In this document: one piece after another, positions 26,056 to 50,626 of the stretch | Layout: every line of letters starts with the position of its first letter | Numbering within the stretch: the stretch's first letter is position 1 | Origin: Dimorphilus gyrociliatus | Lineage: Eukaryota > Animalia > Annelida | Direction: 5' to 3' | DNA length: 64,000 nucleotides | Assembly (NCBI GenBank): GCA_904063045.1 | Contig: CAJFCJ010000012.1 | Coordinates: 310,001-374,000, forward strand | The notes under the pieces: generated by a model | What the model saw: the letters and a program-made list of their open reading frames with translations, nothing else | What the model was told of the DNA's origin: nothing | Databases searched by the model: none | Program-made: the position numbers and the translations under genes

Positions 26056-29000
26056 ATGAATCAATTGATTGGAGTAATAAAAAAATTTTCACCGGTTGTT
26101 TCTTTAAACGAGGAAAAATTTGAAGAATTTTCAGGATTACTAAAAGAAAATGACATCACAACAAAATGGTCCTTAAAAGAGATAGAAGAATATGTTAATA
26201 CATTAAAAATTGAATTTTGCAATGATAAATGTCCCGCAATTAACACAGTCGGTGAAAGGGCGATAAAAGAGAGTTTTGAAATTTTTTCGAATCAAGTATA
26301 CAGGTTTGTAAAAGAAGTTTACTCTTAAGCCATAGTAAATTTATATTTCTTAAATAGCTACTATGCTCTTAAAAGTGGAGAAGATGAAGAATGTTTCTTT
26401 GTTTATGAAAAATTTTTTGATTTGATGTTCACTGCAATGGAAGGAAATTATATATCATCAGGGAATGAGTCCTGCTTTGACAAAATATTTTACCAAGTTC
26501 CCGGAGTTATACGTTTTACTAAAGTCAGTAAAAGCGTTATTCCGTTAAGAATAATATTGAATATTCTATTATACAGTATATATACTGTATATATATATAT
26601 ATATATATATATGATTTTAATAGAATATGAACGAAAATCACGTAAAGAGATTCATTAAAAGTTTAACTAGAAAATTTGAGCCACGACCTCAAGAAACTGA
26701 TGAGAGCAAATGGAAAAAAACAATAAAACGTTGGCCTAGTGAAATTATTTATCATCTTAAGTAAGTCACTTGAAAATTAGATTGAATGATGGCTGAATCT
26801 AAATTTGTATTGTAAACTTTTCTATTCAAGAAAAGAAGGCCTTCTTCAGTCAAGGAAAGAAATAATTATATATATCAATTTCTGGCTTGAATTAAGTCAG
26901 CAGTATAAAGGTTCTTCGAGTGATAATCTTATGATTTATGTGTGTCATGAAATGCTTTCGTTTGCTGCATCAATGGTTAGAGATATGGGAGGTTCTACTT
27001 TATTTGAGGTAAAAACTATTCAAAATTATTCACTTACCATTTATATAATATAAATTATAATTTCATTGAAGGAAGGTTCCACCGACGATGTTGAAAATTT
27101 GCTGCGTACTTACCATACAATTTTCTTCATGGAGGATTTTCCTCGAAATGAATGTGCAGTTGACGCTTGGAGAGACATTATTGTCGAAAGTCTTCAAGTA
27201 GCTATAAAGTGAGTATCAAGCACATAAAATTTGTTCCAGATTTTATTAGTGCCTCTTTTTTTCTGATAGAGATAATAACAAACTGACAGCTATTACTTAT
27301 GATTTTACTTCAAAGGTGTTGTTTTTTGGTAATGATCACGAAACACCCAGATCACTTTCAGATTTAGCAAAAGCCTTGTGTAAAAAGTATATGGAAATAG
27401 ACGTGAGTTAAAAAATAGACATTCAAAGAGTTCATTAAAAAAGTTTTCTTAACATTTTAGTTTGAATCTGTAGGAATGAAGAGCCATTTGGATATCTTCA
27501 TTGAAGAAGTAAAAATGATGAAAGAAGATGAACATGTCTATAGACAATTTGAACATAAAGAGGAAATATTTTTAAATCATTTGGTTCCAAAGTTTCAGTC
27601 AGTATTGCCCTTATACATCAAACGCGTAAAGAAATGTAATGGGTGTACACTTTCAGGGATAATGTAGATAAATTAAAAGAGTTACTTGTCGTAATCATAA
27701 AGAATCCATTGTGGAGAATTGCTTGTGAATACTTTGAAGGTGCAAATGACAAAAAAAAATTAGTGAATTTAAAGAAGAATCCTGAAATCTTCAATTTAAT
27801 GTTCAGTACCATGGACAATCCAGATATACCTTATAATACCGATACACTAGATGCTTTTAAACGTATAGGATATACATTATATGACATAATGGAGTAAGTT
27901 ATTGTAAGAACTTTGTTTACATATAAAACACGAATAAAACTTGAACAGAAAACAAAAAGTTTTCAAGAAAATGACCAGTCTAGTTTACGATGTCATTGAA
28001 AGTGCGTTCAAATATACTAAACATCCTATTCATAGTGCGATATGGCGGTTTTCTATAGCAGTTGATTGGAAGGTAAGAAATGATTATAATATTAAAACTA
28101 CCATTAGTAATTTCTATATTCTGTGTTGGATATAAAAAGGATGAATTACCAAGGTTTAATAATATACTTGTGAGAATTAAATCGATATTGGAAAAGGATC
28201 AAAACATAGTAAAGAAATTCGACATTCTTGTTGAAGTAGTGGATTTTTTCTTTCAAAAATTTAGCTATGTCTATACGTAAGATGGATAAGATGTTCTTTC
28301 GCAATTCTTTACCTGATTTAATTGTCTTTTGCAGAAATGATAAAAGAGTATTGGAATTAAAAGATAACATGGCAGATCTTTACAACTACTGTTACACTTT
28401 ACCATGGACGATAGATGAGGACGATGAAAGACTTCGAGATTCAGACATTTCAGATGAAGAATCTCTAACACTAGCCGGCTACTTTCTTTTCGTCGCTACA
28501 AAATATTTTTATATTCCAGTAAGAGCAATTACATAAAACTCAATATGTTTTAAGTTTGCATTAAACAGAATAACAACATTACCGAGCTAGTAATACCTAT
28601 TGTTCAAACTGCCAAAAATCTACGGAAACAGGAAGATAATGATCTGTTACAGGTGATCAGAATAACTTCTTCAATTATAATATTTACTGTAAAAATATTT
28701 CTTTTATCAGGGACAAGCCGATAAACTATTAAAAGAATTAACAGACACGGCAGACATTCTTGGTGATGATACAGGAAAAGAAATAATCGATGAATTCCTC
28801 CAAACAGAAGATAATACTTTATTAAGTAAAGTTTAATCCATCGAAAATTTATATAGGAAGTTAACAGTATATTTCTTTTTAATAATAGCAAAAGTAATTC
28901 TTATGTATCCCCAATTTACCGATTACATCCATGAAAAACTACCAACAATTTTGGAAATTTCAAAAAGAGGAAATTTAGGGATTGAGATGAATTTTTTAAG

Positions 29001-31221
29001 TTTGCTCAATCAGGTTGCCTCAAAAAATCCTCAAGTATTTAATCAGGATACTTTTGACTATCTCATTGATCAACTGGAGGGGACAAAAGTGACTCAATGC
29101 TATTTAATCTTTCAATCCCTGACTACAAAACAGAATCAGCTGTTCCAAAAGCACGACAAACGATTTGCAGAATTAGTGCAAAATGACAGTTCAGGTTTGT
29201 CATACTGCAATATTTTACCTGAAATAGCAAATTCTCTGGAAAAAGCACAGTACTTTACAAAAGTTCTCTGGGAAAAACTTCAAAGCGAAAGTGGAATTAA
29301 CCGTGCAACGGTAATATATGCCTTACGAAACATGGCTCTTAGGTTCAAAGAACCTGTATTAGTTTATAAAAGCCATCTCACAAAAATGAAAGACGACGTT
29401 CAAATAAAAGACTCGGTAACTGCACTTCTTGATACTTTGGAAGGAAGGTCATTAGAAACTGTCGCAATAGACGTGGAGGAACAGAGAGAAGATATTGATA
29501 ATTTAGATTCCAGAGTTACGAATAATGAAGATAAAATTGAAAATCTTGATAATGATGTCAGAGAAACTAAAGAAGACGTCGCCAATGTTAAACAAGATGT
29601 CAAAGAAACTAAGGAACGCATTGATCAAATTGAATATACAATCAAAGGACTCGATGAAAGAGTTGAAGAACTCAGTCATATGACTCTTTCACATGCTCCC
29701 GCTTGGACTCGTCATGTTTCCGAATTAATGAATGATCAAACCGATCACGATTGGAGACTCTTAGCTATGAAACTCAATTATACAAACGACGATATACGAA
29801 ATTGGGCTACTCAACCAGATCCTTGTCTATCGATGTTTGATGAATGGTTTGCTACTCACAAAACAAGAGAAGCTACAAACGCCATTTTAACTAATCTGAA
29901 AGAAATGAACAGATTAGACGCTGCTGAAATTGTGGAAAGTGCACTTGCAAATGTGAAAGATGTTGTTCAAGATGACGAAGATGAAGAGTTTGAGAAACCA
30001 GAAGTGTTTCTCAGCTATCAATGGGGACATCAACAAGAAGTGAAACTTCTGCGTAAACACTTGGAGATGGCCGGATTCAAGGCATGGATGGACATTGGCC
30101 AAATGGGTGGAGGTGACAAATTATACGCCAAAATCGATGATGGTGTTCGTTCAGCCAAAGTGATTATCAGTTGTGTAAGTGAGAAATATGCAAAATCCGC
30201 AAATTGCTGTAGAGAAGTTAACTTGTCAACAAATCTTGGAAAACCAATGATACCAATACTCATGGAACAATTATCGTGGCCTCCTGCAGGTCCGATGGGA
30301 CCAATCATGTCTGAATATTTGTATATTAGGTTCTTCAAGTCTGGTGGAATGGAAAAAGGCGACTCTGTATTTTGGTTGCCAGCAAAATTTCAAGAACTTC
30401 TCATGCAAGTTCGATACTTCGTCGTACCAGATATGAAACTCATTACGAATGATTCTCCTTATAAAGGATGGATGAATCCACCGGAAGAAGAAATCATCAT
30501 TCCGAAACGAGAACAAAAGGCCATTGAATCAAGCAATGGGAAATCGGAAGAGAACACGGAACAAGAAGTTTCGCCAGATGTCTTTATATCTTATCAATGG
30601 GGAAAACAACCACAAATTAAACGTCTATATAAAAAGCTTAGTGAAATGGGCTATTACTGTTGGTTAGATATCATGCAGATGGGAGGAGGAGATTCTCTTT
30701 TTGATAAAATTGATAAGGGAATCAGAGGAGCAAAAGTGATAATATCATGTGTTACTCCAAAGTATGCATTGAGTGCGAATTGTCGAAGAGAAGTTTCATT
30801 ATCAGGAGCATTGAGTAAGCCAATTGTTCCTTTATTATTAGAAGACATGAAATGGCCACCAGAAGGACCAATGTCGATGACATTTACGGAGCTTTTATAC
30901 ATTGGATTTCACAGAAAGAAAGACGATAAGTTGTGGGAGGGTGATGAATTTAATCAATTAATTTCAAAAATTGACCTGAATGCATCAGGATGTCGAATGA
31001 TTTCGGAGGCAGCGGAGACTAATGAAAGTAGTAAAAAAGCTGAAGATAATGAAGAGGCCGCTCGTAAAAGAAAATTGGAAGAGGAAAATAAGCAAAAAGA
31101 GTTGGAGAAGGAAAATGCGAAAAGAATTGAAGAAGAAAGAAGAAAGGAGGCTGAAGAAATGAAAGAAAAAAATACTGATCAGTCACCAAAAAAGAAGTCA
31201 TCGTTATGTGTTTTATTGTAG
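26056..31221 (+). CDS. Array copy 1: helical N-terminal region - coiled coil - Death - TIR - TIR - charged tail - CaaX (CVLL); 14 exons, 1449 aa
   Basis: Exons traced with consistent phases: 26056-26303, 26358-26523, 26624-26760, 26831-27008, 27072-27208, 27270-27402, 27461-27597, 27657-27893, 27949-28072, 28140-28276, 28335-28518, 28569-28652, 28711-28825, 28889-31221 (total 4350 nt). Death domain ~29701-29946 (DWRLLAMKLNY...W...AT...L..MNRLDAA). TIR1 from 30004 (VFLSYQW...SANCCRE), TIR2 from 30580 (VFISYQW...SANCRRE). Confidence 0.88.
26589..26612. repeat. (AT)n microsatellite in intron 2 of array copy 1
   Basis: Read directly from the sequence. Confidence 0.9.
29485..30993 (+). repeat. 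1,509-bp near-identical coding repeat, copy 1 of 4 (coiled coil-Death-TIR-TIR)
   Basis: Constant offsets of +7769, +13611 and +19465 to the other copies. Sense and antisense translations are essentially identical; only about 6 variable sites were seen by eye. Confidence 0.97.
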
Positions 31222-31545
31222 TTAGAAAACTTTTATGAAAAGAATTTTAATTTTCATAGTGCGATTTTCGTTAATGTTTTATAATTAATAGAAAAGAGAA
31301 ATATGCGATTATTAAATTTAATTAATCAAATATAGAAATATGATTTTATGAATATTTGAAATATTTGTGCGAGAAACGCTGGAAATGAAGTAATTGAGGT
31401 TGAAAATGATTTTGATTTGAAAACTACCATTGATGAATAAATGGTTTGTTGGTCACAATAGTAGCGAGTGGGCATGATCACTAATGATCGTCCTTGACCA
31501 GTATAGCTGGAAGAAAGATATCTTCATTTTGTAGATGAGATAGTT

Positions 31546-31904
31546 TTTTAATGAAAATGTAGATAAGATATTTCATAGATATGTACTGATATCGATTATG
31601 TTACTGTTTGTTTAAATAATTATATACAGTATATACTATCTTTGTTTTTTAACTTCCTGGTGAACATTTTGAATTAATATGAAAAAGGAATTTTTATTTT
31701 TTAATCTTCTGCTAATTTTTTTGAGATAAATGTTTAATGAAAATGTAGATAAGATATTTCATAGATATGTACTGATATTGACTATGTTACTTTTTGTTTA
31801 CATAGTTATATACAGTATATACTATCTTTACTTTTTAACTTCCTGGTGAACATTTTGAATTAGTATGAAAAAGAATTTTTATTTTTGAGTGTTCTGCTAA
31901 TTTT
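31546..31904. repeat. Two-unit tandem direct repeat, period ~186 bp, in the copy 1-copy 2 spacer
   Basis: ATGAAAATGTAGATAAGATATTTCATAGATATGTACTGATA... starts at 31551 and 31737. Both units share AACTTCCTGGTGAACATTTTGAATT and TTCTGCTAATTTT, with scattered substitutions. Confidence 0.9.
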
Positions 31905-33645
31905 ATGAGTAGAGTGAATTCTGTACTTGAGTAATGTTTATAATTGATTGCAATATAAGCAAAAGTGTGAAATTGATTGAATTGTTTGTTCAATTATTAA
32001 GAAAACGCAGAAAATTCTAATTTTTATTATTTATACACTTCGTATTGTTAAATTTCTTAGTAATATTGAAAAAAGCTATCAATGTTTAAGAATTATATGA
32101 AATGTTTATTTTGCGGTTACGTATTGTGTGTAATTAATGAATGTACTTACAAATTTTATAATTAGTTTTTGCCCCAACATGTAACAGTTTTATAGAGGTA
32201 ACTGTTTTATTTATTGATACATAACAGAGAATTGTTCTAATTGATATGTATTCTTTTATTACTTTCGTTTAATATTTTCCACTCCTTTAGTTGACATAGT
32301 TTGAAAGGCATCTAAGTTTATGTAATTATTGTTGATAGCTAAACATAAATATAACTAATTTTGTTAAAGAAAATGATAAATATCTAAAAAAAAATGTTGA
32401 TAATTATTCTTCTAACTATAGTATAAAAATATATTGGACTATTTTATTCAATTGGTATCAAAGTTCCTACTGTGTGTTACTTTATACAATTTTCAATATA
32501 TTACTTTGGTTTAAAGCCTATCTGGAATTGAATTGGGATTTGTTTTACTTTTCTTTTTGCTTGAGGACTTCGAATGATTCAGAGTCATTAGAAACAAGCT
32601 TTGAAAAGAAAAACCGCCAGACTAGTGAATTTGTTTGGCTGACTTAGAGATTTTAAAAATTACAAGATAAGCTTAATTTTCTCAATAGGTTAGAGTTTTT
32701 GATAAGGTTTCTTTAAATTTGTTAATTGACTCTGTATTGATACAAATCTTACTGGTGAGTGTTTATGGAAAATATTGATTTGTGTTGATTTATTCCTCTA
32801 AGGACTACATGAAAAATTTATTGACGAAATCTAGTGTAGAATATAATATATTAGTCATTTGCAAGAGATTCAGTTATTGAATGCTAAAACCTTATTTTTA
32901 AGTTACCTTATTTTCCCACTATTTATTTGAATAGTGGCAGAAAGGCCTTTATGATCTGATTTCTGTACAATCCCTTTATTTGATGTTCAAATACTTTTCC
33001 TAAAATAGAGCAAACTATAAAAAGACATGTGGAAAATATTAAATACAAGTTAATAAGAGTGTTAAATTGAGTCCGTTGTCATTTATAATCAGGTAACCAG
33101 TTTAAGATTCAAAAAGATGGAGTTATAAAAAATTTATGTTATTTGTATTACAACTCTAAATATAAGATATAAACAATAAAATCAATTCTATAACATTTAT
33201 ACTGATATAAAATAGTAACCTACGTCTTAAACTATAAAATGAACAGTTTGATATTATCTCAAACAAATCTCCAAGTATATTTTGCGCAGCAATTGTTATT
33301 TCTGCTATGTAGGTTTAGGAAAAGTTTGTATAATTCTAAAAAAATGCTCTTGACTGCTTTAATTTAACATTTACATAGTTACATAGTTGTAATACCGATA
33401 CGTTAGTACTTAACATTGGTTAAGCATGTTTATAACGTATCAGGAATAAGAGTTTGTTCCTAACGCTCTTATACCATACTTATTTGTGTTCAAAGAAATG
33501 AAAACACTAAGCTGTTGATAGTTGTGAAAAAAGTGAATTTTAGCTTGGTGATAAAAAAAAATAATGTGATAAGACTCTTTTGCAATATTAATAACTCCAT
33601 GTAGATAAAACCAGTACTATTGATTCGTTTCGCACTTATTTATAA

Positions 33646-33692
33646 ATTGCTAGGTTACACTTGACGGTGTCAGTTCAGCAAATTTTTCCTTA
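33646..33692 (+). promoter_or_regulatory. Conserved upstream block of array copy 2 (X-box-like + TGACG + TCAGCA-AT-rich)
   Basis: ATTGCTAGGTTACACTTGACGGTGTCAGTTCAGCAAATTTTTCCTTA aligns with the block upstream of copy 3; ~100-145 bp before the ATG. Confidence 0.5.
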
Positions 33693-33790
33693 TTCTAGAA
33701 AATATTCTGTAGTTTATTATCAACTGCGTATTTTGGTAGAAGCCTTAGACAATAATAATTAATACCAGTCTACTCTTGTAGATTTTTGCT

Positions 33791-36700
33791 ATGGACAAGG
33801 GAATAAAATTAATAAAGAAATATTCTCCGCTTGCTCAAATAACAGAAGAAAAGCAAGCGAAATTTGAAGATGAACTCTATGACGTATCGACCGAAAATAA
33901 GCCAAGCATTAAAGATTTACTCTCTTATGGAAACGTTCTTAAACCGGAATTATTGAATGAAAAAGGTTCGAGTGGCAGCTCTCCTGGAGAGTCTGCAATC
34001 AATGAAGCATTTCGTCATTTATCAAATGTTATCTCTGAGTTAGTATACTTATGAACAAATTATTTTTCATTTTTCAACTAATGAAAAGTAAAAAAAATAG
34101 ATATTTTACATAAGAATAAATGATAAAAGGGGTGAATCTAACATTTTTTTTTCTTTCCGACTTTTTAGACATTATAGCAATGATGAATCGAATTTGGAAC
34201 ACTTGAAACCTCTTTATAAAGATTTAATGAATCTTATAACAACTGCTTATGAAGGAAACTATGTAACGTCTGGAAATTGTGACGCAATTAGAACCATACT
34301 TCAATTTGACTATTATAGTGACTATATTGAGGTTAGCAACAGTTTTTGTTTAAAGAAAACAAATAAGATAAACTGATTTTAACTTTTTAGAAAGAAGTAA
34401 CAGTAGATGATATTAGACGTTTGATGAGAGGAATTTGTCGTGACTTCAAACCTAGGGAAAATGACACAACCTTGACTACATGGAAAAACGATGTATACTA
34501 TCCTTTGGGTGAGATCATCGGCTGTGTAAAGTACGTAGAGATTATCTGACTAGCTATTCTACAAGAAAGTTTTATTGATATTAAAATTTCAGATTCGAAG
34601 TGCTTAGAAAGTGTAAAGCTGAAATAATTCACGGATTACTATTTTGGGCAGAGACAGGTATGAAGTATAAGGAAGATGACGACTCTGTTGAACATTTTAT
34701 ACAGTTTACGAATCTTATGAGTAGTGTTTTCGAAACTGCTTGCAATTCAATGCTTGATGATGAGAAGGGAGCACTTTTATTTATGGTAAATTTCATATGC
34801 ATTAATGATATATCAATAATCTTGTTCTAATGTACATAGGACATTGATGACAAAACATTCGATTCATTTTTATCAAGAGCAGACAAAATACTCTCAAATA
34901 AAGACTTTCCTCCAAATCGTTATCCCGAAGATAACATGCAACTTCTTGTACAAAATTGCCTTACAAGCTTTATCCAGTAAGATAAATACTTGAAAGATAG
35001 GTTACGATTGATAGTATATCTTATAATTTTTTTCCTTTTAGAGAAAGTAATGATTCAAAGATGTTAGGAAAAGTCTATGGTTTATACAATAAATTTGCTT
35101 CGTCAAGCAATGGAAAAGCTTTTGATATAGTAGAAGATATGAAGACGACGTTTCAAGAAAAGCTATCATTAATTGATGTAATCTATCATGTGTTTGAATT
35201 ACATATATTAACACAGTATAAATGTATATGCTGTATATATGTATAACAGTTTGAAGCTATTGGAATGAAAAGTGCCCTTGACCAATTCTTAGACGATTTA
35301 CGAGCAATAGAAAATGAAAATCAAGTCTCTCTTGTACGGGATAAGTACGAAAAGAGTTACGCGAAGGAGTATCTTCCGAAATTAAAGTTTGTCAATTTTA
35401 ATGAAGAATATGAGCTATTTTATCATTTGAGTTTTTAATTTTACACAGGAAAGATATTAACAAATTGAAGGAATTTATTCAAATTTTGATAGAAAATCCC
35501 TATTATGGCATATGCAGGGAATATTTTGACGACCATGTTACACAAAAGAAACTATTCACTTTTAAAGAAAATCCGGAAATACTTAATTTCATTTTTGATT
35601 TAATGTATAAATCAAAGTATGAATATAATGAAAGATTTAAGAGTGCTTATGATATAATAGGCCAAAGTTGTGTCCAGTTACTTGAGTAAGTGTATAAACG
35701 AATTCATTTGCAAAATTAAAACAAATATCTTTAACAGAAAGGAAAAATTATTGACAAAACGGAAAAAAGATCTATTAGATATTTTGGAACGATGCTTCGA
35801 AGTACCCAAACACCCTTATCATTCTGCTTGCAGCAATCTACTGTACCATGTCGAATGGAAAGTGAGCATTATAGAATAAAATTAATATAAAATATGTAAA
35901 AGAATTATAATTATAGGGAGAGATCGAGAGATATTCTAGAATTGTTAAAAAGCTGAGAGTTCATGTGGAAAAAGAGAATTCATATATAGAAAAGGATGAT
36001 GTTATAGTTCGTATAACTTCACAAGTAACTGAATATGTTAACTATCACAATGGGTATATATGAAAATTCAATCTGTTTTAAATTTAATTTAATGTTTTCT
36101 CAAAGAAAAAATAAAAAATTTATTGAATACGCTGACTCGTTTGCTGATCTTTTTAAATACTGCGTTAAGTTATCGTGGCTTTACGATTCTGATGATAAGA
36201 TTGTTAATGATAGAGATTTGGATGAGGATGAGAGGAGAACGCTCGCTGGAACAATTCTCATTAAACTTATGACCAATATCTACGAACCGGTAAAATAAAG
36301 AGTCTAGTTGATTGTATAATTAATAACACTAATATCAATAACTTAGAATAACGACTTCAATGATTTTGTACAACCAATTGTCGAAACGTTAAAGAAGCTG
36401 AAAAAACAAGACGACGATGAACAGATACAAGTAAGATAGTAACTACTGACTTAAGGTATTTGAAGAATTTCTCTTATATAAAGGAGTGTGCCAAGAACTT
36501 AGTAAGTGAACTAACTGATCAAATGGAACTTCTTGGTGATGAAGCAGGAGAAGATATAATTGAAGAGTTTTTGAATGATCGTGAGATATCTCAATTAGGT
36601 AGCCGTCTATTTTAAATATTTTACTGATATACTTTAAGGTTTCTATAAACAATTCAGATCGAATAGCCAGCATGTATCCATCCTGTCAAGTCAAGATACA

Positions 36701-39065
36701 CGAAAGCTTAGAAGAGATACTAGATATCGCAGAAGAAAATGGAGATGTAGGAATGATCACTTTACAAACCTTATTGAATAAAATTGCCGACAATGATCCC
36801 AAACAAATAACAAAAAAAGTATTTGACTATGTCATGAGCATATTAGACACAAACTTTGGAACTGCATATTTCTTTTTCTTACAAAAACTGGCTCCAAAAA
36901 GACCTCAGTTGTTTGATAATTACCACACCAGAATCAATGATCTCATTAGACAAGGCGAACACGGTAATGTCTTTTTACAACTACTGCCGGACTTGTCCCG
37001 AACAAAAGAACTAGCTCAAACAAATGCCAAGCTGACATGGGAGATATGTCAAAAAAATGATCCAACTTACGCGATAAGTGCTTATTATACACTACGATCC
37101 ATTGCCCTACGATTTAAAGAGACTGTTGAGGAGTATAAACCTCAATTGGAAAAACTAAAAGACGACCCAAAATTACGAGATAGCATAATGTCAATTCTTG
37201 ACGTATTGGAAGGAAGGACGTTAGAAACTGTAGCAAATGATGTTGAAGAACAAAGAGAAGATATTGATAATTTAGATTCCAGAGTTACGAATAATGAAGA
37301 TAAAATTGAAAATCTTGATAATGATGTCAGAGAAACTAAAGAAGACGTCGCCAATGTTAAACAAGATGTCAAAGAAACTAAGGAACGCATTGATCAAATT
37401 GAATATACAATCAAAGGACTCGATGAAAGAGTTGAAGAACTCAGTCATATGACTCTTTCACATGCTCCCGCTTGGACTCGTCATGTTTCCGAATTAATGA
37501 ATGATCAAACCGATCACGATTGGAGACTCTTAGCTATGAAACTCAATTATACAAACGACGATATACGAAATTGGGCTACTCAACCAGATCCTTGTCTATC
37601 GATGTTTGATGAATGGTTTGCTACTCACAAAACAAGAGAAGCTACAAACGCCATTTTAACTAATCTGAAAGAAATGAACAGATTAGACGCTGCTGAAATT
37701 GTGGAAAGTGCACTTGCAAATGTGAAAGATGTTGTTCAAGATGACGAAGATGAAGAGTTTGAGAAACCAGAAGTGTTTCTCAGCTATCAATGGGGACATC
37801 AACAAGAAGTGAAACTTCTGCGTAAACACTTGGAGATGGCCGGATTCAAGGCATGGATGGACATTGGCCAAATGGGTGGAGGTGACAAATTATACGCCAA
37901 AATCGATGATGGTGTTCGTTCAGCCAAAGTGATTATCAGTTGTGTAAGTGAGAAATATGCAAAATCCGCAAATTGCTGTAGAGAAGTTAACTTGTCAACA
38001 AATCTTGGAAAACCAATGATACCAATACTCATGGAACAATTATCGTGGCCTCCTGCAGGTCCGATGGGACCAATCATGTCTGAATATTTGTATATTAGGT
38101 TCTTCAAGTCTGGTGGAATGGAAAAAGGCGACTCTGTATTTTGGTTGCCAGCAAAATTTCAGGAACTTCTCATGCAAGTTCGATACTTCGTCGTACCAGA
38201 TATGAAACTCATTACGAATGATTCTCCTTATAAAGGATGGATGAATCCACCGGAAGAAGAAATCATCATTCCGAAACGAGAACAAAAGGCCATTGAATCA
38301 AGCAATGGGAAATCGGAAGAGAACACGGAACAAGAAGTTTCGCCAGATGTCTTTATATCTTATCAATGGGGAAAACAACCACAAATTAAACGTCTATATA
38401 AAAAGCTTAGTGAAATGGGCTATTACTGTTGGTTAGATATCATGCAGATGGGAGGAGGAGATTCTCTTTTTGATAAAATTGATAAGGGAATCAGAGGAGC
38501 AAAAGTGATAATATCATGTGTTACTCCAAAGTATGCATTGAGTGCGAATTGTCGAAGAGAAGTTTCATTATCAGGAGCATTGAGTAAGCCAATTGTTCCT
38601 TTATTATTAGAAGACATGAAATGGCCACCAGAAGGACCAATGTCGATGACATTTACGGAGCTTTTATACATTGGATTTCACAGAAAGAAAGACGATAAGT
38701 TGTGGGAGGGTGATGAATTTAATCAATTAATTTCAAAAATTGACCTGAATGCACCAGGATGTCGAATGATTTCGGAGGCAGCGGAAACGAAGGAAAGTAG
38801 TAAAACAGCAAAAGATGATGAAGAGGCCGCTCGTAAAAGAAAATTGGAAGAGGAAAATAAGCAAAAAGAGTTGGAGAAGGAAAATGCGAAAAGAATTGAA
38901 GAAGAAAGAAGGAAGGAGGCTGAAGAAAGGAAGAAACTGGCTGAAGAAAAACGGAAACAAGAGGAAGAATCAAAGAGAAAGCAAGAAGAAGATAGGAGTA
39001 AAAAAGATGAAAATAAGAGTGCTCAACCGCGAGCAAAGAAATCATCAATGTGTACCTTACTCTGA
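33791..39065 (+). CDS. Array copy 2: same architecture, ends CTLL
   Basis: ATG 33791. Same 13 intron positions and phases as copy 1, open frame across all junctions I traced. Terminal exon from ~36658 contains the identical core at 37254-38762. Confidence 0.88.
37254..38762 (+). repeat. 1,509-bp near-identical coding repeat, copy 2 of 4
   Basis: Offset +7769 from copy 1. Confidence 0.97.
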
Positions 39066-39464
39066 TAGAAATATTGAATTTATTAATACTGATTAATTTT
39101 GTAAAATTTTTGCTCATGATTGTACAATATGAAATAGAGATTTTTAATGATCAAATTTACCTAAGACACATAAAAGTTATCTGGTTTAACAGTACATATC
39201 TCTTATGCCGTATCTTTTTTTCTGATAATAATCCAAAGATTTCAGAGCCACCTTCGAATTATTATCTTTTTTATAATGATTGTTTTTGGCCATATGTTTT
39301 GGCCTTAATATTACAACTCATATAGGTGCCCTTCCATTGGACTACCGCTTTTTATGTCCTACTTTCGTAAGTAGTCTCGGTTAATAATCTAATATATTCT
39401 TATACCGATTTCTGTTTAGCAAATAATATATGAAGCCATTGATTATATCTTTGTTTCTCTATTC

Positions 39465-39515
39465 GTTGCCAAGTTACAATTGACGTTCGTCAACTCAGCA
39501 GAATATTTTTCCTTA
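39465..39515 (+). promoter_or_regulatory. Conserved upstream block of array copy 3
   Basis: GTTGCCAAGTTACAATTGACGTTCGTCAACTCAGCAGAATATTTTTCCTTA; ~75-125 bp before the ATG. Confidence 0.5.
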
Positions 39516-39588
39516 GACCACTAAAAAGTTCAATTTTTGGAAGTAAGCAGCCAAAGACAAATCGTTTTGGGTGAATAGCCGATAAAGT

Positions 39589-42500
39589 ATGGACAAGGCT
39601 ATAAAACTACTTAGGCAATATTCCCCGTTTGGTGAAATAGAGGAGGGTGCACTGTCAGACGTCAGAGAAATTTTTTCGTCAAGTGCTCCAAAAGAATGTA
39701 CTATTCCTGAGCTAATTATATTTACGAAGTATTTTCGAGAGGAATTATTAAAACAGCCATTACCTGTTTACAATTCAAATGGTGAATCGGCTTTCCGTGA
39801 ATTCGGCCAATATTTAAAATATAGGATCAACGAGTAAGCGTTATTAGAGAATATTTCATAATATTACTAATAATATATTAAACACTTTTATTAATCAGAA
39901 TTCTTTATTCTTGCAGAATGTGTTTTCTAATAACTGCACAACTAAATGTTTGAATCATTAACTATATTTACTTTTCTTTTCCAGTCAATATAATCGAGAC
40001 GACAAACTTCCAATAGTAAAACCATTGTATGATGAGTTTATTGAAACTATACTAAAGGTTTACGAAGAGGATTGCGTAACTTCAGGAAATTATAGTTCCC
40101 TTAGGGATCTAATATATGGGAGCAACTTTAAAACATATGCTAAGGTTAGAAAATATATAAATATTAGTTTATTCTTCATTTGAACAAGAGTTATAAATTC
40201 TTTTATAGGAGAACTTTACAGAAACTCACATGAAAAGGCTTATTCAAGCATTCAAAAGAGAATTTGAGCCAAAAAAAGAGACTAATGTTCGATCATGGAC
40301 ATCAAATATGCCTTATCCAGCTGGTGAAATATTGGATATGATAAAGTAAAAATAAATATTTATTGAAATATCTAAAGAATACATTTAATATTATTTATAT
40401 TTAGTCCTAAAGTCTGCGAATCAAATAAAAAGGAAATGATTGAGTTACTGCTATTTTGGTGTGAAAATTCAATGAAGTATAAAGGTGACGATGACGGCAC
40501 CAGGAATAAAATAGCTTTGGTCAGCAAAATTCTTTCGGTGTTTGAGTCACCATTGAAAGTCTCAAGGAAAGAAAACAATAATAGATGTATGCTTTTTATG
40601 GTTTGTTATAAATTACTATCAATTTTATATAGTTCTAAAGAAAAGTTATTCAGGATTTAGATATGAAAATTTATGACTATGCGTTTGGAAAGTTTCGTGA
40701 AATTATGATGTCAGAAGATTATGGGGCTAACAGATATGTCAATGATATTATTTCATTCTTAGTGAAGGAGTCGTTAGCGATTGAACTAGAGTAAGCAAAT
40801 AACTGTTTTAATTGATAAAAGATTTAAAAAATATAACATATTAATAGACATACTACCAACAATGAACTCTTAGCAAAAGCCTTTGCATTTTGCATGGATA
40901 TAAGAAAAAATGCAAAAAAAGATTCCAAATATCTTTCAAAGAAAATGATTGAAAAGATGAATGAAAGATATCTTACTATTGATGTAAGTTGAAATATAAT
41001 TCATTTAATAATGTTAATTATTTCCTTTAATTTTCTCAAAAATTAATAGTTTAAGGCAGTTGGTATGAAGGATCATTTTGATCAATTTTTAGACGAATTA
41101 GCCAGTATACGTACAAGAGAAGAATGCTCTAGTCTAGTTGAATTAAGGAAAAAGCATTTTGAAGAAAAGTTTTTTTCCATCATTCAGTAAGATAATATAA
41201 ATTAGTAATATAAATGATAAGAATTCATATTTAATTTGGATTTTCAGAAATGATATTGAACAGTTGAAACGTTTTTTAAAAGTAATTCTTGAAAATCCAT
41301 GGAGAGAAGTACTAAATACGTTTTATGTGGAAAAATTAGAAAAAAAGAAGCTTATAAACTTTAAAAAGAATGCCGAAATATTTTCATATATTTTTGATGT
41401 TGCTTATAATGCGAAATTAGATTATGACGAGAGAATATTGGATTGCTATTGGAAAATTGGTTTATCACTTTACGAAGCATTAGAGTTTGTTTTAAAACAC
41501 ATTTAATAGCCATGGTATTAAGATTTTTTCTCTTTACATAAACTTCTTAGCAAGCAAAACTGTATTGCAAAATTCAAGAAAGATATTGTAAAAGTTATCG
41601 ATAAAGCTTTCGATTTCTCTAAGCATCACCTACACAGTGCTGTATTCAGAATGACCTATGGAATTGAATGGAAGGTATAACCAGTGACACATTTTACGGC
41701 AATGTATATTATTACATTCAGTGTACTAATAATTCGTTAAATTTTTAACAAGAATGAATTAGCGACATTTCATAGTATTCTTCGTAAACTGAACGTTATT
41801 ATAGCGAGAAAAGAAGACCTAAGTCATCCATCAGATAGAATATGCGAAACTGCAAAATTAGTTATAGAAAGAATCTCATATGGAGTCGGGTATGAAAGCC
41901 GATGTCATAATTTTTTTTAATATTTACAAGCTATTGAACTTGAACAGCAAAAATAAGAAAATACTTGAGATAAAGGATACTTTGGGTGAACTTTTTAACG
42001 CTTGTTACGACCTACCATGGTCCATTGATGATGACGATCCTAGAATCGCAAAAAAATTGATTGTTAATGATGATGATAAGCGAACTCTGGCAGGACACAT
42101 TCTGAAGACTTCGTTAAAAACGATCTATCAGACAGTACTTATTCAATAAAGACAGACGAAATATTAGATAACATATGAAATTTTTCAGAATAACGACTAT
42201 AGTGAACTTTTATTTCCGGTTATCGAAGTAATAAAGAAATTAAAAAGACAAGACGATGACCAAGAGTTACAGGTTTAATAGTTGATATTTTAGCTCGGCG
42301 ACACTGAATTGTCTTTTCAAAACAGAACGCAGCAACTGACTTGATAAAAAATTTAACAGATCAGATGGAACTATTAGGGGATGAAGGTGGTATAGAGATT
42401 ATAGATGAATTTCTTGAAGAAAGAAATGGTGCTCTTTTAGGTTACAAACTTAATTATTCTAAATAAAATTAATATAATAAGGAAGATGATCATTTATAGG

Positions 42501-45009
42501 AAAGGTTGCTGAAATGTATCCAAACTGCTCTGACTATATCCATGAGAAGATCCCTGAAATTTTGGAAATAACTCAGGAAGAAGAAAATCTGGCCATGCAC
42601 TATTTCGTTCAATTAATGGGAAAAGTCATTCAACATCATCCTGAACAAATCACGGAAGACATAGTTGATTTCTTAATGACATATTTAGACGGACATCTAG
42701 CGGCGTCAACTTTTCAAATCTTTCAAAAAATCGCAACGACAAACTCACGCCTCTTAGAAAAACACCACACAACGATTGGTGACTTCATTCAAAATCACGA
42801 ATACGGCGGTATGTTTTGTAATTTAACAGCTGATCTTTCAAATTCCGAGCAGACGGCCAGTTATTTTACTGACATTATATGGAAAAGACATATTGCGACT
42901 GGTGAAACACCTTATACACCATCTCTTCTATATTCTTTTCGTTCAATGGCTCACAAATACAAAGAACCAGTTGCCAAATACCGACAAGAATTTGAAAAAA
43001 TGAGAGAAGGAAAACATAAAGATGCTATTTTAGCAATATTTGATGTACTAGACGGAAGGACGTTAGAAAATGTAGCAAATGATGTTGAAGAACAAAGAGA
43101 AGATATTGATAATTTAGATTCCAGAGTTACGAATAATGAAGATAAAATTGAAAATCTTGATAATGATGTCAGAGAAACTAAAGAAGACGTCGCCAATGTT
43201 AAACAAGATGTCAAAGAAACTAAGGAACGCATTGATCAAATTGAATATACAATCAAAGGACTCGATGAAAGAGTTGAAGAACTCAGTCATATGACTCTTT
43301 CACATGCTCCCGCTTGGACTCGTCATGTTTCCGAATTAATGAATGATCAAACCGATCACGATTGGAGACTCTTAGCTATGAAACTCAACTATACAAACGA
43401 CGATATACGAAATTGGGCTACTCAACCAGATCCTTGTCTATCGATGTTTGATGAATGGTTTGCTACTCACAAAACAAGAGAAGCTACAAACGCCATTTTA
43501 ACTAATCTGAAAGAAATGAACAGATTAGACGCTGCTGAAATTGTGGAAAGTGCACTTGCAAATGTGAAAGATGTTGTTCAAGATGACGAAGATGAAGAGT
43601 TTGAGAAACCAGAAGTGTTTCTCAGCTATCAATGGGGACATCAACAAGAAGTGAAACTTCTGCGTAAACACTTGGAGATGGCCGGATTCAAGGCATGGAT
43701 GGACATTGGCCAAATGGGTGGAGGTGACAAATTATACGCCAAAATCGATGATGGTGTTCGTTCAGCCAAAGTGATTATCAGTTGTGTAAGTGAGAAATAT
43801 GCAAAATCCGCAAATTGCTGTAGAGAAGTTAACTTGTCAACAAATCTTGGAAAACCAATGATACCAATACTCATGGAACAATTATCGTGGCCTCCTGCAG
43901 GTCCGATGGGACCAATCATGTCTGAATATTTGTATATTAGGTTCTTCAAGTCTGGTGGAATGGAAAAAGGCGACTCTGTATTTTGGTTGCCAGCAAAATT
44001 TCAGGAACTTCTCATGCAAGTTCGATACTTCGTCGTACCAGATATGAAACTCATTACGAATGATTCTCCTTATAAAGGATGGATGAATCCACCGGAAGAA
44101 GAAATCATCATTCCGAAACGAGAACAAAAGGCCATTGAATCAAGCAATGGGAAATCGGAAGAGAACACGGAACAAGAAGTTTCGCCAGATGTCTTTATAT
44201 CTTATCAATGGGGAAAACAACCACAAATTAAACGTCTATATAAAAAGCTTAGTGAAATGGGCTATTACTGTTGGTTAGATATCATGCAGATGGGAGGAGG
44301 AGATTCTCTTTTTGATAAAATTGATAAGGGAATCAGAGGAGCAAAAGTGATAATATCATGTGTTACTCCAAAGTATGCATTGAGTGCGAATTGTCGAAGA
44401 GAAGTTTCATTATCAGGAGCATTGAGTAAGCCAATTGTTCCTTTATTATTAGAAGACATGAAATGGCCACCAGAAGGACCAATGTCGATGACATTTACGG
44501 AGCTTTTATACATTGGATTTCACAGAAAGAAAGACGATAAGTTGTGGGAGGGTGATGAATTTAATCAATTAATTTCAAAAATTGACCTGAATGCACCAGG
44601 ATGTCGAATGATTTCGGAGGCAGCGGAGACTAATGAAAGTAATAAAAAAGCTAAAGATGATGAAGAGGCGGCTCGTAAAAGAAAATTGGAAGAGGAAAAT
44701 AAGCAAAAAGAGTTGGAGAAGGAAAATGCGAAAAGAATTGAAGAAGAAAGAAGGAAGGAGGCTGAAGAAATGAAGAAACTGGCTGAAGAAAAACGGAAAC
44801 AAGAAGAGGAAATCAGAATGCGAGAAGAAGAAATTAGAAAGCGGGAAGAAGCAATAATGAAGCGAGAACTAGAATTGAAAAAGGTAGAAGAAGATAATAG
44901 GCGAAAAAATGAGGAGAAACAGAGGCGAGAAACAGAGTTGAGAAGGAGAAATGAAGAGGAAAATCGTGATAATCCTCCGAAAAAGTCATCTACCTGTTCA
45001 ATTTTATAA
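39589..45009 (+). CDS. Array copy 3: same architecture, longest charged tail, ends CSIL
   Basis: ATG 39589. Same exon structure with open frame. Core at 43096-44604. Confidence 0.88.
43096..44604 (+). repeat. 1,509-bp near-identical coding repeat, copy 3 of 4
   Basis: Offset +13611 from copy 1. Confidence 0.97.
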
Positions 45010-45541
45010 ATATTTAATAATTTTAAAAAAGTATATTTTTTAAAGTGCAAATGGTGCTGTATATATGGATAAAAGTTTATATTCTAGTAAATACTATTGT
45101 CGACATGAAATGAATTAAAGGTTTTTTTTGTGAAGTTATTGTTGTGGCTGAATGAAAATCTTGAAATACAAATTTTTTTGAGTTGTGTTACTTTAAATAA
45201 TATAATTTCTTTAGATACAAATTTTTCATAAAAACGAGTTATAAGCTTTGCTAAAACGATTGTTTTTTTGTTCAGTTACACATGTTTTGTATATTTTTTG
45301 ATATGAAGCATGATCGTTTTGCATATAGCACAGCTATCTTTATTACTTAATTGATTTATTATTACAGCGAATTGTTTATTTTCTACGAAAGTGCTTTAGG
45401 AATTGATTATTTCTATGTTATGCTTGTTGGCAAGGTGAAACTAACTAATAACAGCGCAGCTCAAATTTTCTATATAGATTGCTTAACCTCATATTTCATT
45501 TTGAAATTGAAAATTCGTAAACAAAACACCTTGATTTTCGA

Positions 45542-48500
45542 ATGATGGATGTTTTTATAAAAGAAGTTGATAAATTTTCTCCTTTTAGTGGAATAACTGA
45601 TGATAAACTCTCCAAGTTTCGTGAAATTTGTCGGAAAGATTGTCCCGAAACAGCTTCAGTGGACGATTGCTTAAAATTTATAAAATTTTTTCGGAAGGAG
45701 TTGATGAAGAAACCATTACCGATCAACAATGATTCGGCGTCATCGGCCTTTGAAGAATGCGGCGTAATTGTCCGGCGTTTAGGTTCCAAGTAGGTTCATT
45801 TAATCGTTAAAAGCGATTTGCTGAGAATAAAGTGATTTTAATTTTATGGTCATCCAGTATAAAAGATAATGAAATGGTAAATCAGTTATTTGATGAGTGT
45901 GTGGAAACTATCATTAAAGTCTATGAAGAAGATTGCGTAACATCTGATAATTACAGTTCGCTAAGGTCATTAATACATGTAAAAAAATTTACCGAATACG
46001 CCGAGGTTTATGTTTAATTGTGCTAATTCTGATCTTATAAATAATTAAAAATCTATACAACAGACGAATACAACAGATATTCAACTGAAAAGACTTATTA
46101 ATGCTTTTAAAAGAGAGTTTGATCCAAAAGGTGAGAATGATCTGAAACAATGGGCCGGAAATATGCCTTACCCAGCTGGTGAATTATTGGAGAGTTTCAG
46201 GTAAGATTGATAAAATTTATTGGTTTATACTTAGTGCATTATTAGCCATATTATATATTTTTAGTTCTAAGGCTGTTAAAGAAAGTAAAAAAGAATTTAT
46301 AGAAATATTCATATTTTGGGCTGAAACTGCATTAAAGTACAAAGAAAAAGATAGTGATCACGTATTTTATTTATATTTGATTGCTAAAGTGCGCTCAATT
46401 TTTGAACGTCCATTGGAGAAAATCTCTAAAAAGGAGAAAGCAGAGATTCTTTTCATCGTTTGTATAAAATTACTATAAAATTTATAAAAAATCAATAATT
46501 CACGCTATTTAGAATTTGGACACAGAAGTTTACGATTATGCCTTCTCCAAATGTCAGAAAATCATGTTTTCTCCCGATTTTCTTTCAAATAGATATCCTA
46601 AGGATGTTATTGAGCTTCTAATCACAACTTCTCTGACCTATGCAATAAAGTAAAGTAGTTCACTAGTAATTTTTTCGTCTTTAGAAAGAACTAAGTTTTT
46701 CTTTTACAGAAATAATCCTACGAATAAATTATTAGCAAAAGCTTATGACTTTTCTTATACAATGTATAAAAATGATGAGAGAGTCGTCAAACGCCTTGTT
46801 GATAGCTTATTTAAATACCTTAATGGAAACTTTCTAACAATTGATGTAGGTTTTATAGTATAACTTTTAGAGAATAGTGCGTCTTAATTCCTAATGTATA
46901 TTGCTTTCTAAAAATATTTAGTTTGTGGAGGTTGGTATGAAAAGCCACTATGATCAATTTTTGGATGAGATAGCTAACATTAGAACAGGACCAGAAGCTA
47001 ACCAAGTGGTTGATTTGAGAAAAAAGCATTTTCAAGAAAAGTATTTTTATCTTATTCAGTAAGATTCTTGAATGTCATTGTAATAGATGTTATAAAAAGT
47101 TTCATTCAATTTTTAGACAAGATAAAGAAAATTCAAAAAAATTTTTAAAAGTGTTACTTGAAAATCCATGGGATAAAATAATAAGAACATTTTTCGTTGA
47201 CGCTATGAATAAGAACTTAATAAATTTCCATCAAAATCCCGATATATTTTCATATACTTTTGATTTGGCTTATAAGACTAAAATCTACTATGATGAAAGA
47301 TCACGTAGTGGCTATTGGACAATTGGTTCAACAATCTGTGAAGTGTTACAGTTGCGTTGAATATTAACAAAACGCAGTCTATATTCTAATATATTTTCTA
47401 TTGTATTTAGAAACCAGGGACTCATCAGCAAACTAAAAAAAGATATTTTTCGAGCTATTGAAGCGACTTTTGATTTTTCTAAACATCAACTACATGATTT
47501 CATTGTTGGATTTATACAAACTTTAAAATGGAAGGTCCAAACATGATAATTCTCAATAGTTGAAAATTATGATGTATCTTTTTTATACAGGGCGAAATAT
47601 CAACATTCAAGAGTATTCTTGTTAAGCTTAAAATAATCATAGACAAAAAAGAAAATATATGCGATGCTGAAGATAAGATCTGTAGGGTTACAAAAGCAGT
47701 CTTTGAACAAGTCAATATTGATTTAGCGTATGTAGAATAGAATAAATGAATGTTTTTCTTTATTAATTCACCAAAATTTTATAGAAAAAATAGGAAACTT
47801 CTTCAGATAAAGGATGCTTTGGGTGAGCTCTTTAATGCTTGCTACAACAATTCCTGGTCTATTTCAAATGATGATTCGAGGATTGCAAAACAGATATGTA
47901 TCGGTGATGATGAAAAGAGAACACTAGCCGGACAAATCCTAAAAGTTACAATGAACTCTATTTATCAATATGTACTTTCAGTGTATTAAATAAGAAGAGA
48001 AATCTGATAATGTATAATTAAATTTTTTCAGAATTTTGAATTCACTGCTCTATTTGAGCCAACAATCGAAACACTGAGACTTTTAAGAAAGCGATATGAA
48101 GATAAAGAACTACAGGTTCAACAAAATTTTTCTTTTCATTACTCTAGCAATTACAGTCGTTTATTTAAAAATACAGAAAGCAGCATCAGAAACAATATTA
48201 GGTTTATCTGATAAAATAGAGTTGATAGGAATTGATACAGGACACGACATCATTGATCAATTCATTGAAGAGAGAAGTATTCGAATCTTTGGTACAAATA
48301 CTAAATATTATATAACGCTGCAAAATACTGTAAAAAAATAACTAATATATTTACAGGAAAAGTTACCGAATTGTATCCTAGTTGTGCAGATTATATTCAC
48401 AAACACCTAGAGGAAATTCAAGATATAGCTGAGGACGAAGGTCAAATAGGACTTAATAATTTTGTACAACTAGTAACCAAAATTGGACAACATAACCCAA

Positions 48501-50626
48501 AAGAAATAACGCAGAAAATGGTTGACTTTTTAATCGACTATGTCGACGGACCATTTGCTTTTACAGCAATTCAACAAATAATACTACATCGAGTAGAGAC
48601 CTTAGAAAATTATCATGATAACTTTGCCAATGCCATAAAGTTTTCCCAATATGGTGGACTTTATATACCAGATAATATTATATTAGCCCTATGTACTACT
48701 GAAGAGAGAGCAAAATTCTATAGTAAAGCTTTATGGGAAAAGCATCTCCAGAATCAGGACACACCATATACCAAAGGAATTCTATACGCCCTTCAGCAAA
48801 TTGCTCAAAAGTACAAAAATGCAGTTGTCACTTACCAAAAAGAAATACAGAATATGAAAGACGGGAAGTATCAAAGTGCAGCTGCTGATGTCATCAATGT
48901 TTTAGAAGGAAGAACTCTGGCGAATGTAGCAAATGATGTTGAAGAACAAAGAGAAGATATTGATAATTTAGATTCCAGAGTTACGAATAATGAAGATAAA
49001 ATTGAAAATCTTGATAATGATGTCAGAGAAACTAAAGAAGACGTCGCCAATGTTAAACAAGATGTCAAAGAAACTAAGGAACGCATTGATCAAATTGAAT
49101 ATACAATCAAAGGACTCGATGAAAGAGTTGAAGAACTCAGTCATATGACTCTTTCACATGCTCCCGCTTGGACTCGTCATGTTTCCGAATTAATGAATGA
49201 TCAAACCGATCACGATTGGAGACTCTTAGCTATGAAACTCAACTATACAAACGACGATATACGAAATTGGGCTACTCAACCAGATCCTTGTCTATCGATG
49301 TTTGATGAATGGTTTGCTACTCACAAAACAAGAGAAGCTACAAACGCCATTTTAACTAATCTGAAAGAAATGAACAGATTAGACGCTGCTGAAATTGTGG
49401 AAAGTGCACTTGCAAATGTGAAAGATGTTGTTCAAGATGACGAAGATGAAGAGTTTGAGAAACCAGAAGTGTTTCTCAGCTATCAATGGGGACATCAACA
49501 AGAAGTGAAACTTCTGCGTAAACACTTGGAGATGGCCGGATTCAAGGCATGGATGGACATTGGCCAAATGGGTGGAGGTGACAAATTATACGCCAAAATC
49601 GATGATGGTGTTCGTTCAGCCAAAGTGATTATCAGTTGTGTAAGTGAGAAATATGCAAAATCCGCAAATTGCTGTAGAGAAGTTAACTTGTCAACAAATC
49701 TTGGAAAACCAATGATACCAATACTCATGGAACAATTATCGTGGCCTCCTGCAGGTCCGATGGGACCAATCATGTCTGAATATTTGTATATTAGGTTCTT
49801 CAAGTCTGGTGGAATGGAAAAAGGCGACTCTGTATTTTGGTTGCCAGCAAAATTTCAAGAACTTCTCATGCAAGTTCGATACTTCGTCGTACCAGATATG
49901 AAACTCATTACGAATGATTCTCCTTATAAAGGATGGATGAATCCACCGGAAGAAGAAATCATCATTCCGAAACGAGAACAAAAGGCCATTGAATCAAGCA
50001 ATGGGAAATCGGAAGAGAACACGGAACAAGAAGTTTCGCCAGATGTCTTTATATCTTATCAATGGGGAAAACAACCACAAATTAAACGTCTATATAAAAA
50101 GCTTAGTGAAATGGGCTATTACTGTTGGTTAGATATCATGCAGATGGGAGGAGGAGATTCTCTTTTTGATAAAATTGATAAGGGAATCAGAGGAGCAAAA
50201 GTGATAATATCATGTGTTACTCCAAAGTATGCATTGAGTGCGAATTGTCGAAGAGAAGTTTCATTATCAGGAGCATTGAGTAAGCCAATTGTTCCTTTAT
50301 TATTAGAAGACATGAAATGGCCACCAGAAGGACCAATGTCGATGACATTTACGGAACTTTTATACATTGGATTTCACAGAAAGAAAGACGATAAGTTGTG
50401 GGAGGGTGACGAATTCAATCAATTAATTTCAAAAATTGACCTGAATGCACCAGGATGTAGAACACTGTCAACATCAAGCAGAGTAAAAGATCAGTCGACA
50501 ACTGTTTCGTTAAATAAGAAAAGTGTTCAGAAAAATTCCGAGAAAAGAGATGACACAAACAGTTTGTTTGAATACAAGTACCAAAATTCTAATAGCAATA
50601 CATCAGGGGCATGCCAGATTTTATAA
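45542..50626 (+). CDS. Array copy 4: same architecture, unrelated short tail, ends CQIL
   Basis: ATG 45542. Same exon structure with open frame. The track's start at 48371 (TTG) is internal to the last exon. Core at 48950-50458. Confidence 0.87.
48950..50458 (+). repeat. 1,509-bp near-identical coding repeat, copy 4 of 4
   Basis: Offset +19465 from copy 1. Diverges immediately after ...GCACCAGGATGT. Confidence 0.97.

Follow-up and report, generated by a model that had tools for sequence, protein, structure and literature searches.

SARM1 and Caenorhabditis elegans TIR-1 are NADases of the ARM-SAM-SAM-TIR type, and SARM1 carries an N-terminal mitochondrial signal. MyD88 joins a Death domain to a single TIR domain. 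Two other TIR proteins, TRAM and TIRAP/Mal, reach membranes by means of a short terminal signal: TRAM is N-myristoylated and is released from the membrane by a phosphoserine beside the lipid, and TIRAP/Mal binds phosphatidylinositol 4,5-bisphosphate. The tails of Rho and Rap GTPases end in C-aliphatic-aliphatic-Leu, as in the KKSRRCVLL of Cdc42 and the KKSSCQLL of Rap1B. The present analysis concerns a cluster of four genes in a stretch of 64,000 nucleotides from the annelid Dimorphilus gyrociliatus (GenBank assembly GCA_904063045.1, contig CAJFCJ010000012.1, forward-strand positions 310,001 to 374,000), here called the window and numbered 1-64,000. All four genes lie on the + strand and encode SARM1-like TIR proteins with a CaaX-type end in which X is leucine (CaaL). 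These ends are read here, with a probability of about 0.85, as functional prenylation signals shared by a conserved family of proteins, and this family most probably works tied to a membrane. The reading rests on the motif, its conservation, the domain content of the proteins and the enzymes encoded in the genome.

The four tails share with those of Rho and Rap GTPases a lysine patch, a serine near the cysteine and the terminal C-aliphatic-aliphatic-Leu, but here they are carried by a HEAT-Death-TIR-TIR protein of 1450 amino acids, the lysine patch is shorter, and the serine is fixed three residues before the cysteine throughout the family. SARM1 and TIR-1 resemble the family in their TIR domains, in a catalytic-type glutamate and in a helical-repeat N-terminal region; unlike in SARM1, no SAM domain was found by Pfam, and the proteins have instead a coiled coil and a Death domain, two TIR domains, a solenoid of about 860 amino acids and a C-terminal CaaX box. 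The order of Death then TIR recalls MyD88, and although most family members are named in databases as uncharacterised or Death domain-containing, one sea-urchin member was deposited as 'MyD88-like protein L1'; the TIR domains here are, however, of the SARM1/TIR_2 type and duplicated, and MyD88 does not share the long solenoid, the coiled coil or the lipidation signal. As in TRAM and TIRAP, a short terminal signal would bring a TIR protein to the membrane, but the signal is C-terminal, of a predicted prenyl type, and belongs to a different protein family. An enzymatic TIR protein with a membrane tether is also known from Dictyostelium: the TIR NADase TirC is anchored at the endoplasmic reticulum through an N-terminal helix, the removal of which leads to filaments and cell death (bioRxiv 10.64898/2026.04.30.722052). 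That tether is a transmembrane helix rather than a lipid, and the architecture of TirC is unrelated and of bacterial origin; by analogy, the parallel suggests one use that a tether may have. Full-text literature searches, outside of which lay the review by Gerdol et al. (2017, Dev Comp Immunol), returned no TIR protein with a CaaX box of its own or described as prenylated, consistent with the remark in an earlier note on this DNA that prenylation of such a protein is unusual.

On re-reading of the sequence, the four C-termini that the earlier note had given (PKKKSSLCVLL, AKKSSMCTLL, PPKKSSTCSIL and NTSGACQIL) and their coordinates proved exact. Counting from the C-terminus, copy 1 ends in PKKKSSLCVLL and a TAG stop codon at 31186-31221, with Ser at position -7 encoded by 31198-31200, Cys by 31207-31209, CVLL by 31207-31218 and the stop at 31219-31221. 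Copy 2 ends in KKSSMCTLL and TGA at 39036-39065 (Ser(-7), 39042-39044; CTLL, 39051-39062; TGA, 39063-39065), copy 3 in KKSSTCSIL and TAA at 44980-45009 (Ser(-7), 44986-44988; CSIL, 44995-45006; TAA, 45007-45009), and copy 4 in SGACQIL and TAA at 50603-50626 (Ser(-7), 50603-50605; CQIL, 50612-50623; TAA, 50624-50626). In all four the cysteine stands exactly at -4 and is followed by an aliphatic a2 residue and X = Leu (VLL, TLL, SIL and QIL). When the 185 open frames of at least 60 amino acids in the window were screened for a strict CaaX-like end, C-x-[ILVM]-[LIMVF], these four were the only ones to carry it. A 22-residue tail query found no match among Protein Data Bank sequences, and in the AlphaFold2 (AF2) model of the terminal exon of copy 3 the last 13 residues have a predicted local distance difference test (pLDDT) score below 50 and are predicted to be flexible, which would leave the motif accessible.

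Two protein searches returned 185 homologues, from annelids (Dimorphilus, Capitella, Owenia), a nemertean, many molluscs, echinoderms, hemichordates, amphioxus and rotifers; the family is present in at least seven phyla and has expanded to many copies in molluscs and echinoderms. Cysteine occupies position -4 in 164 of the 185, and a2 is Ile, Leu or Val in 160 of those 164, in which X is Leu (103), Met (27), Ile (18), Val (7), Ser (5), Gln (3) or Phe (1). At the last 30 positions other than -4 cysteine is nearly absent, and the tail before the motif varies in length and sequence across the seven phyla; outside the folded domains, the motif is the best-conserved feature of the family. The other full-length D. 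gyrociliatus paralogues, 58-81% identical in the core, all end in CaaL as well (CSIL, CLLL, CNIL, CTIL and CLLL), preceded by K(K/T)SST. The claim that selection maintains the motif is borne out by the retention of the cysteine, the aliphatic a2 and a prenyl-type X over seven phyla; the accompanying description of the copy 4 tail as otherwise unrelated is not, because that tail has lost the lysines and still keeps the serine at -7 (S-G-A-C-Q-I-L).

Conservation of this kind bears on whether Ser-x-x-Cys-a-a-X might be kept for a reason other than lipidation, as a PDZ-type or degron-type C-terminal ligand or for a redox-active or metal-binding cysteine. A hydrophobic C-terminus can indeed act as a class II PDZ ligand; yet the constraint follows the CaaX pattern, in which the Cys at -4 does not vary, a1 is unconstrained, a2 is aliphatic and only prenyl-type residues stand at X, a lysine-rich patch precedes the motif just as it does in Rho GTPases of the worm itself, and a single cysteine is unable to chelate a metal, all of which makes a non-lipid role very unlikely.

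Self-BLAST of the window revealed a tract of 1.5-1.8 kb shared by the four copies at 98.7-99.7% DNA identity, which lies at 29437-31168 in copy 1 with partners at 37206-38936, 43051-44778 and 48925-50462. Between the four genes, DNA identity over the coiled coil-Death-TIR-TIR core reaches 99.4-99.9%, and in the alignment the copies do not differ at all in the protein sequence of this core. Nine sites vary in 1515 nucleotides of core; all nine are third-position and synonymous, which indicates that the genes are live. Protein identity falls to 30-38% in the solenoid part of the terminal exon and to 30-45% over the solenoid exons, and blastn between copies found no match outside the shared tract. 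The result is a step-like mosaic, in which an effector module undergoes concerted evolution under diverging heads and tails. An assembly artefact as the source of the identical cores was rejected on the distinct flanks and the nine copy-specific synonymous differences.

The shared tract ends at least 53 nucleotides before each stop codon, and in copy 4 already at residue 697, leaving the CaaL codons outside it in every copy. Since the motif codons lie outside the tract and differ synonymously between copies (AAA/AAG, TCG/TCA/TCT, TTG/CTC/TTA and TGT/TGC), the amino acids are held by selection on each gene separately. Chance and gene conversion are therefore excluded as explanations of the motif.

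The genome contains three prenyltransferase beta genes, whose best solved relatives are the beta subunits of farnesyltransferase (FTase), geranylgeranyltransferase type I (GGTase-I) and Rab geranylgeranyltransferase (RabGGT); the GGTase-I beta gene lies at C6:2727873-2728762. Prenyltransferase alpha-subunit repeats, ICMT and Rce1 are also encoded. Terminal exons of Rho/Rac/Cdc42/Ral-like genes of the worm end in KKKKCVLL, QQRKCTLL, KKKGACTVL, RGKCLII, RRCVVL and KKCCIL, and the CVLL of copy 1 is the same as the Cdc42-like end and the CTLL of copy 2 the same as the Rac-like end. As a rule, a CaaX box with X = Leu (or Phe or Ile) is directed to GGTase-I, and the assignment of the four tails to this enzyme in the earlier note thus agrees with the rule, with the presence of the beta subunit and with the worm's own CVLL and CTLL GTPases.

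In some copies at least, the end might instead be prenylated with farnesyl or with a mixture of lipids. Other lineages of the family tolerate Met, Ser or Gln as X, an FTase beta gene is present, and cross-prenylation of CaaX proteins is known. All window copies and the other D. gyrociliatus paralogues, however, have the canonical GGTase-I signature of X = Leu with an aliphatic a2, and this signature is also that of the worm's Cdc42-like and Rac-like ends, so that farnesyl or a lipid mixture is judged unlikely. Homologues of the rotifer type end in CS(I/L)M, a farnesyl-type box; in these the class of lipid would change and the lipidation signal would stay. Many rotifer-type ends read ...(K/R)R(I/V)(G/K)SAPxxxQSRACS(I/L)M, in which the R-x-x-S-x-P stretch resembles a 14-3-3 binding site. 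Such ends recall the prenyl-phospho hybrid motif of Rnd3.

The serine at -7, three residues before the cysteine, is present in 161 of the 164 CaaX-bearing homologues and is invariant in the alignment of homologues. It is better conserved than the lysines at -8 and -9, which are found in only about half of the first 104 CaaX-bearing homologues. Ser(-7) most likely controls membrane residence. It could be a phospho-switch, an idea raised earlier for the KKSS of copies 1 to 3 that fits the invariant serine, and phospho-switches beside the CaaX cysteine are known in Cdc42, RhoA, Rap1B and K-Ras4B; contact with a prenyl-binding chaperone would fit equally well. In complexes of PDE6-delta, a serine at -3 from the prenylated cysteine hydrogen-bonds to Glu88 in high-affinity cargo, and this serine together with a hydrophobic residue at -1 raises the affinity about 50-fold or more (PMC5512577). 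The residue at -1 from the cysteine is Leu in copy 1 and Met in copy 2, and the worm's PDE6-delta gene, at C16:282125-282535, keeps the glutamate of the Glu88 position.

A prenyl group together with a polybasic patch or a second cysteine directs proteins to the plasma membrane; in signals of the K-Ras4B/Rac1 type the patch consists of several Lys or Arg residues no more than about 10 positions from the cysteine. Copy 1 has KKK, copies 2 and 3 have KK and one arginine, and the patch is weaker than in the worm's Rho-family ends; the net charge of the last 15 residues before the cysteine is about +3 in copy 1, +2 in copy 2, -1 in copy 3 and 0 in copy 4. Given the short KK patch and these charges, polybasic targeting to the plasma membrane, as had been proposed, is plausible for copies 1 and 2 only. 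It is doubtful for copy 3, and copy 4 has neither the patch nor a second cysteine.

Four long open reading frames (ORFs) on the + strand (28903-31221, 36672-39065, 42514-45009 and 48371-50626) encode the motif-bearing ends. By Pfam, each carries one Death domain and a pair of TIR_2 domains, in agreement with the domains named in the earlier note; the ORFs are not whole proteins, each being the last of 14 exons. Published D. gyrociliatus models, returned by the protein search, map exactly onto the window with zero mismatches and the same stops. They are DgyrCDS8667 (copy 1, 1449 amino acids, 26056-31221, terminal exon 28889-31221, mapped in 14 blocks), DgyrCDS8668 (copy 2, 1480 amino acids, 33791-39065, terminal exon 36658-39065), DgyrCDS8670 (copy 3, 1513 amino acids, 39589-45009, terminal exon 42500-45009) and DgyrCDS8671 (copy 4, 1421 amino acids, 45545-50626, terminal exon 48357-50626). 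An AG lies 14 nucleotides 5' of every apparent ORF start, where the reading frame is still open. Our own splice-site prediction placed three short exons further upstream, the conserved lengths being 84 and 115 nucleotides, and its last three introns agree in position with those of the published models. Ten more coding blocks are colinear between the copies, as are the upstream exons of copies 3 and 4. The introns of the four genes measure 50-154 nucleotides, which agrees with a median of 66 bp for the species (PMC7854359). The TTG listed as the start of the copy 4 ORF is an internal leucine codon in the 14-exon model. An exact database look-up of the four ORF translations gave no match, the database entries being the full 14-exon proteins.

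Transcript 3' ends were deduced from the published models, poly(A) signals and conservation. Poly(A) signals lie 90-215 nucleotides 3' of the stops in copies 1, 3 and 4. As a general rule for the whole annotation, the D. gyrociliatus models weighted transcript assemblies 10x over ab initio calls (PMC7854359). Should the main transcripts end otherwise, by an alternative last exon or internal polyadenylation, the CaaL isoform would be minor or not made, and the lack of a canonical poly(A) signal downstream of copy 2 speaks for this. The published models, on the other hand, end at the same stops, no strong donor consensus occurs in the final 400 nucleotides of copies 1 to 3, the downstream frames close at once and are unconserved, and the ATG of the next gene lies about 530 nucleotides 3' of copies 2 and 3. 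The tight conservation of an unused end across phyla would also be hard to explain, and a different transcript end is the least likely of the alternatives considered. Readthrough of the stop codons was rejected: three different stops are used, and the downstream frames close within 0-21 codons and are unrelated and unconserved.

The domain order in the full proteins is a HEAT-like solenoid, a coiled coil, a Death domain, two SARM1-like TIR domains, a variable tail and CaaL. In copy 1 the signalling core lies at 29734-30981, with Death at 29734-29943, TIR1 at 30004-30420 and TIR2 at 30580-30981 (Pfam). The N-terminal 860 amino acids have no Pfam match, and tblastn with the N-termini of distant homologues found nothing upstream in the window. 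For residues 1-862 of copy 3, AF2 predicted an all-alpha solenoid (mean pLDDT 92, predicted template modelling score 0.77), for which fold searches returned only generic HEAT proteins (importin-beta, SF3B1 and CAND1). The terminal-exon model of copy 3 (mean pLDDT 80) contains the end of the solenoid, a 57-residue helix corresponding to the coiled coil, Death, TIR1, a disordered linker and TIR2, followed by a second linker, an unbroken Glu/Lys/Arg-rich helix of about 100 residues and the flexible end that bears the motif. This helix, residues 719-817 of the model (44668-44964), spans the distance from TIR2 to the CaaL end. The stalk comprises about 100 helical residues in copy 3 according to the model, and about 45 in copy 1 and about 75 in copy 2 as judged from sequence; in copy 4 the region is Ser/Asn-rich and non-helical, and the charged helical stalk is absent.

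By sequence, the closest solved relative of both TIR domains is the SARM1 TIR domain, and the glutamate of a REV motif in each aligns with the KEI motif of SARM1 (Glu642). Across 54 aligned homologues this catalytic-type glutamate never varies in TIR1, and in TIR2 its conservation is at least 90%. The terminal-exon model had its top structural matches in full-length SARM1 and C. elegans TIR-1, at low template modelling score. NADase activity of the family is putative.

Several points weigh against reading the CaaL ends as working prenylation signals. The motif is missing from 21 of the 185 homologues, of which several are labelled partial or low quality and the others are unexplained. Copy 3 has only a weak lysine patch, and copy 4 has none. 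No AATAAA or ATTAAA occurs within 600 nucleotides of the stop of copy 2, and an alternative 3' exon in this species is possible. Lipidation, the target membranes and the role of the serine are, for every family member, what we infer from sequence.

If the ends are prenylated, GGTase-I would add a 20-carbon geranylgeranyl group to the cysteine at -4 after translation, Rce1 would then cut off the last three residues, ICMT would methylate the new C-terminus, and a protein of about 1450 amino acids would thereby be tethered to the cytosolic face of a membrane. The lysines just upstream of the cysteine would draw copies 1 and 2, and doubtfully copy 3, towards acidic membranes, for example the plasma membrane; copy 4, having neither lysines nor a second cysteine, would be expected on endomembranes. 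Ser(-7) may tune membrane residence by phosphorylation or by contact with a PDE6-delta-type carrier. Because the stalks differ in length between copies, the paralogues would carry a common Death-TIR-TIR engine under solenoid heads of their own, each at its own distance from its own membrane, and confinement to a membrane would favour, or restrain, the oligomerisation of TIR and Death domains that proteins of this kind rely on. More tentatively, and on balance doubtfully, the family could represent ancient bilaterian lipid-anchored, SARM1-like, NAD-consuming sensors with a switch made of prenyl group and serine (phosphorylation or PDE6-delta-type extraction); gene conversion would keep one Death-TIR-TIR engine while solenoid heads, stalk and tether charge diversify, and each paralogue would sense a different ligand, at a different membrane and a different distance from it.

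Two further genes of this genome bear on TIR proteins with CaaX-type ends. A separate gene at C2:1363783-1367229 on the - strand combines COR-A (Roc/COR) with a Death domain and a single TIR_2 domain, and its last residues are CTVCTIL; this gives the genome a second TIR architecture with a CaaL end, here with an extra cysteine that could be palmitoylated. At C13:953276-956515, also on the - strand, a TIR open frame is followed by an apparent short GTAAGT...TAG intron and a frame ending in KSRACLIM, and this may be a third type of TIR protein, with a farnesyl-type CaaX box. Among the paralogue models, DgyrCDS3184 (918 amino acids, C5:160986-165746) begins with a five-residue mini-exon and does not have the ten upstream solenoid exons of its siblings; on the duplicate contig C246 a matching exon is present 1.8 kb further upstream, and the model is therefore probably 5'-truncated. 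The contig pairs C5/C246 and C35/C186, each of a large and a small contig, carry identical or near-identical genes; these are most likely haplotigs that the assembly left uncollapsed, which inflates any count of paralogues taken from it. Within the cluster, the stop-to-ATG gaps at 39066-39588 and 45010-45544 measure only about 525-535 nucleotides, and each has to hold both the 3' end of the gene before it and the promoter of the gene after it. The 2.6-kb gap between copies 1 and 2 is the sole long intergenic space of the cluster and contains, at 31536-31904, a 184-nucleotide unit directly repeated once at 92% identity, in a region without similarity to the four genes. A fifth copy or remnant was looked for beside the cluster, and none was found.

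New in this analysis are the true gene structure, the invariant serine with its two readings, the enzyme and GTPase controls, the conversion-tract argument, and the solenoid and stalk models. The family has so far appeared in databases only as uncharacterised or 'MyD88-like', and the motif makes it open to cheap, concrete experiments. TIR proteins work through assembly, and the site of assembly decides what they do; a prenyl anchor is, as far as was found, undescribed for any TIR protein. Such an anchor would connect innate-immune signalling in invertebrates with the machinery of prenylation and of prenyl chaperones.

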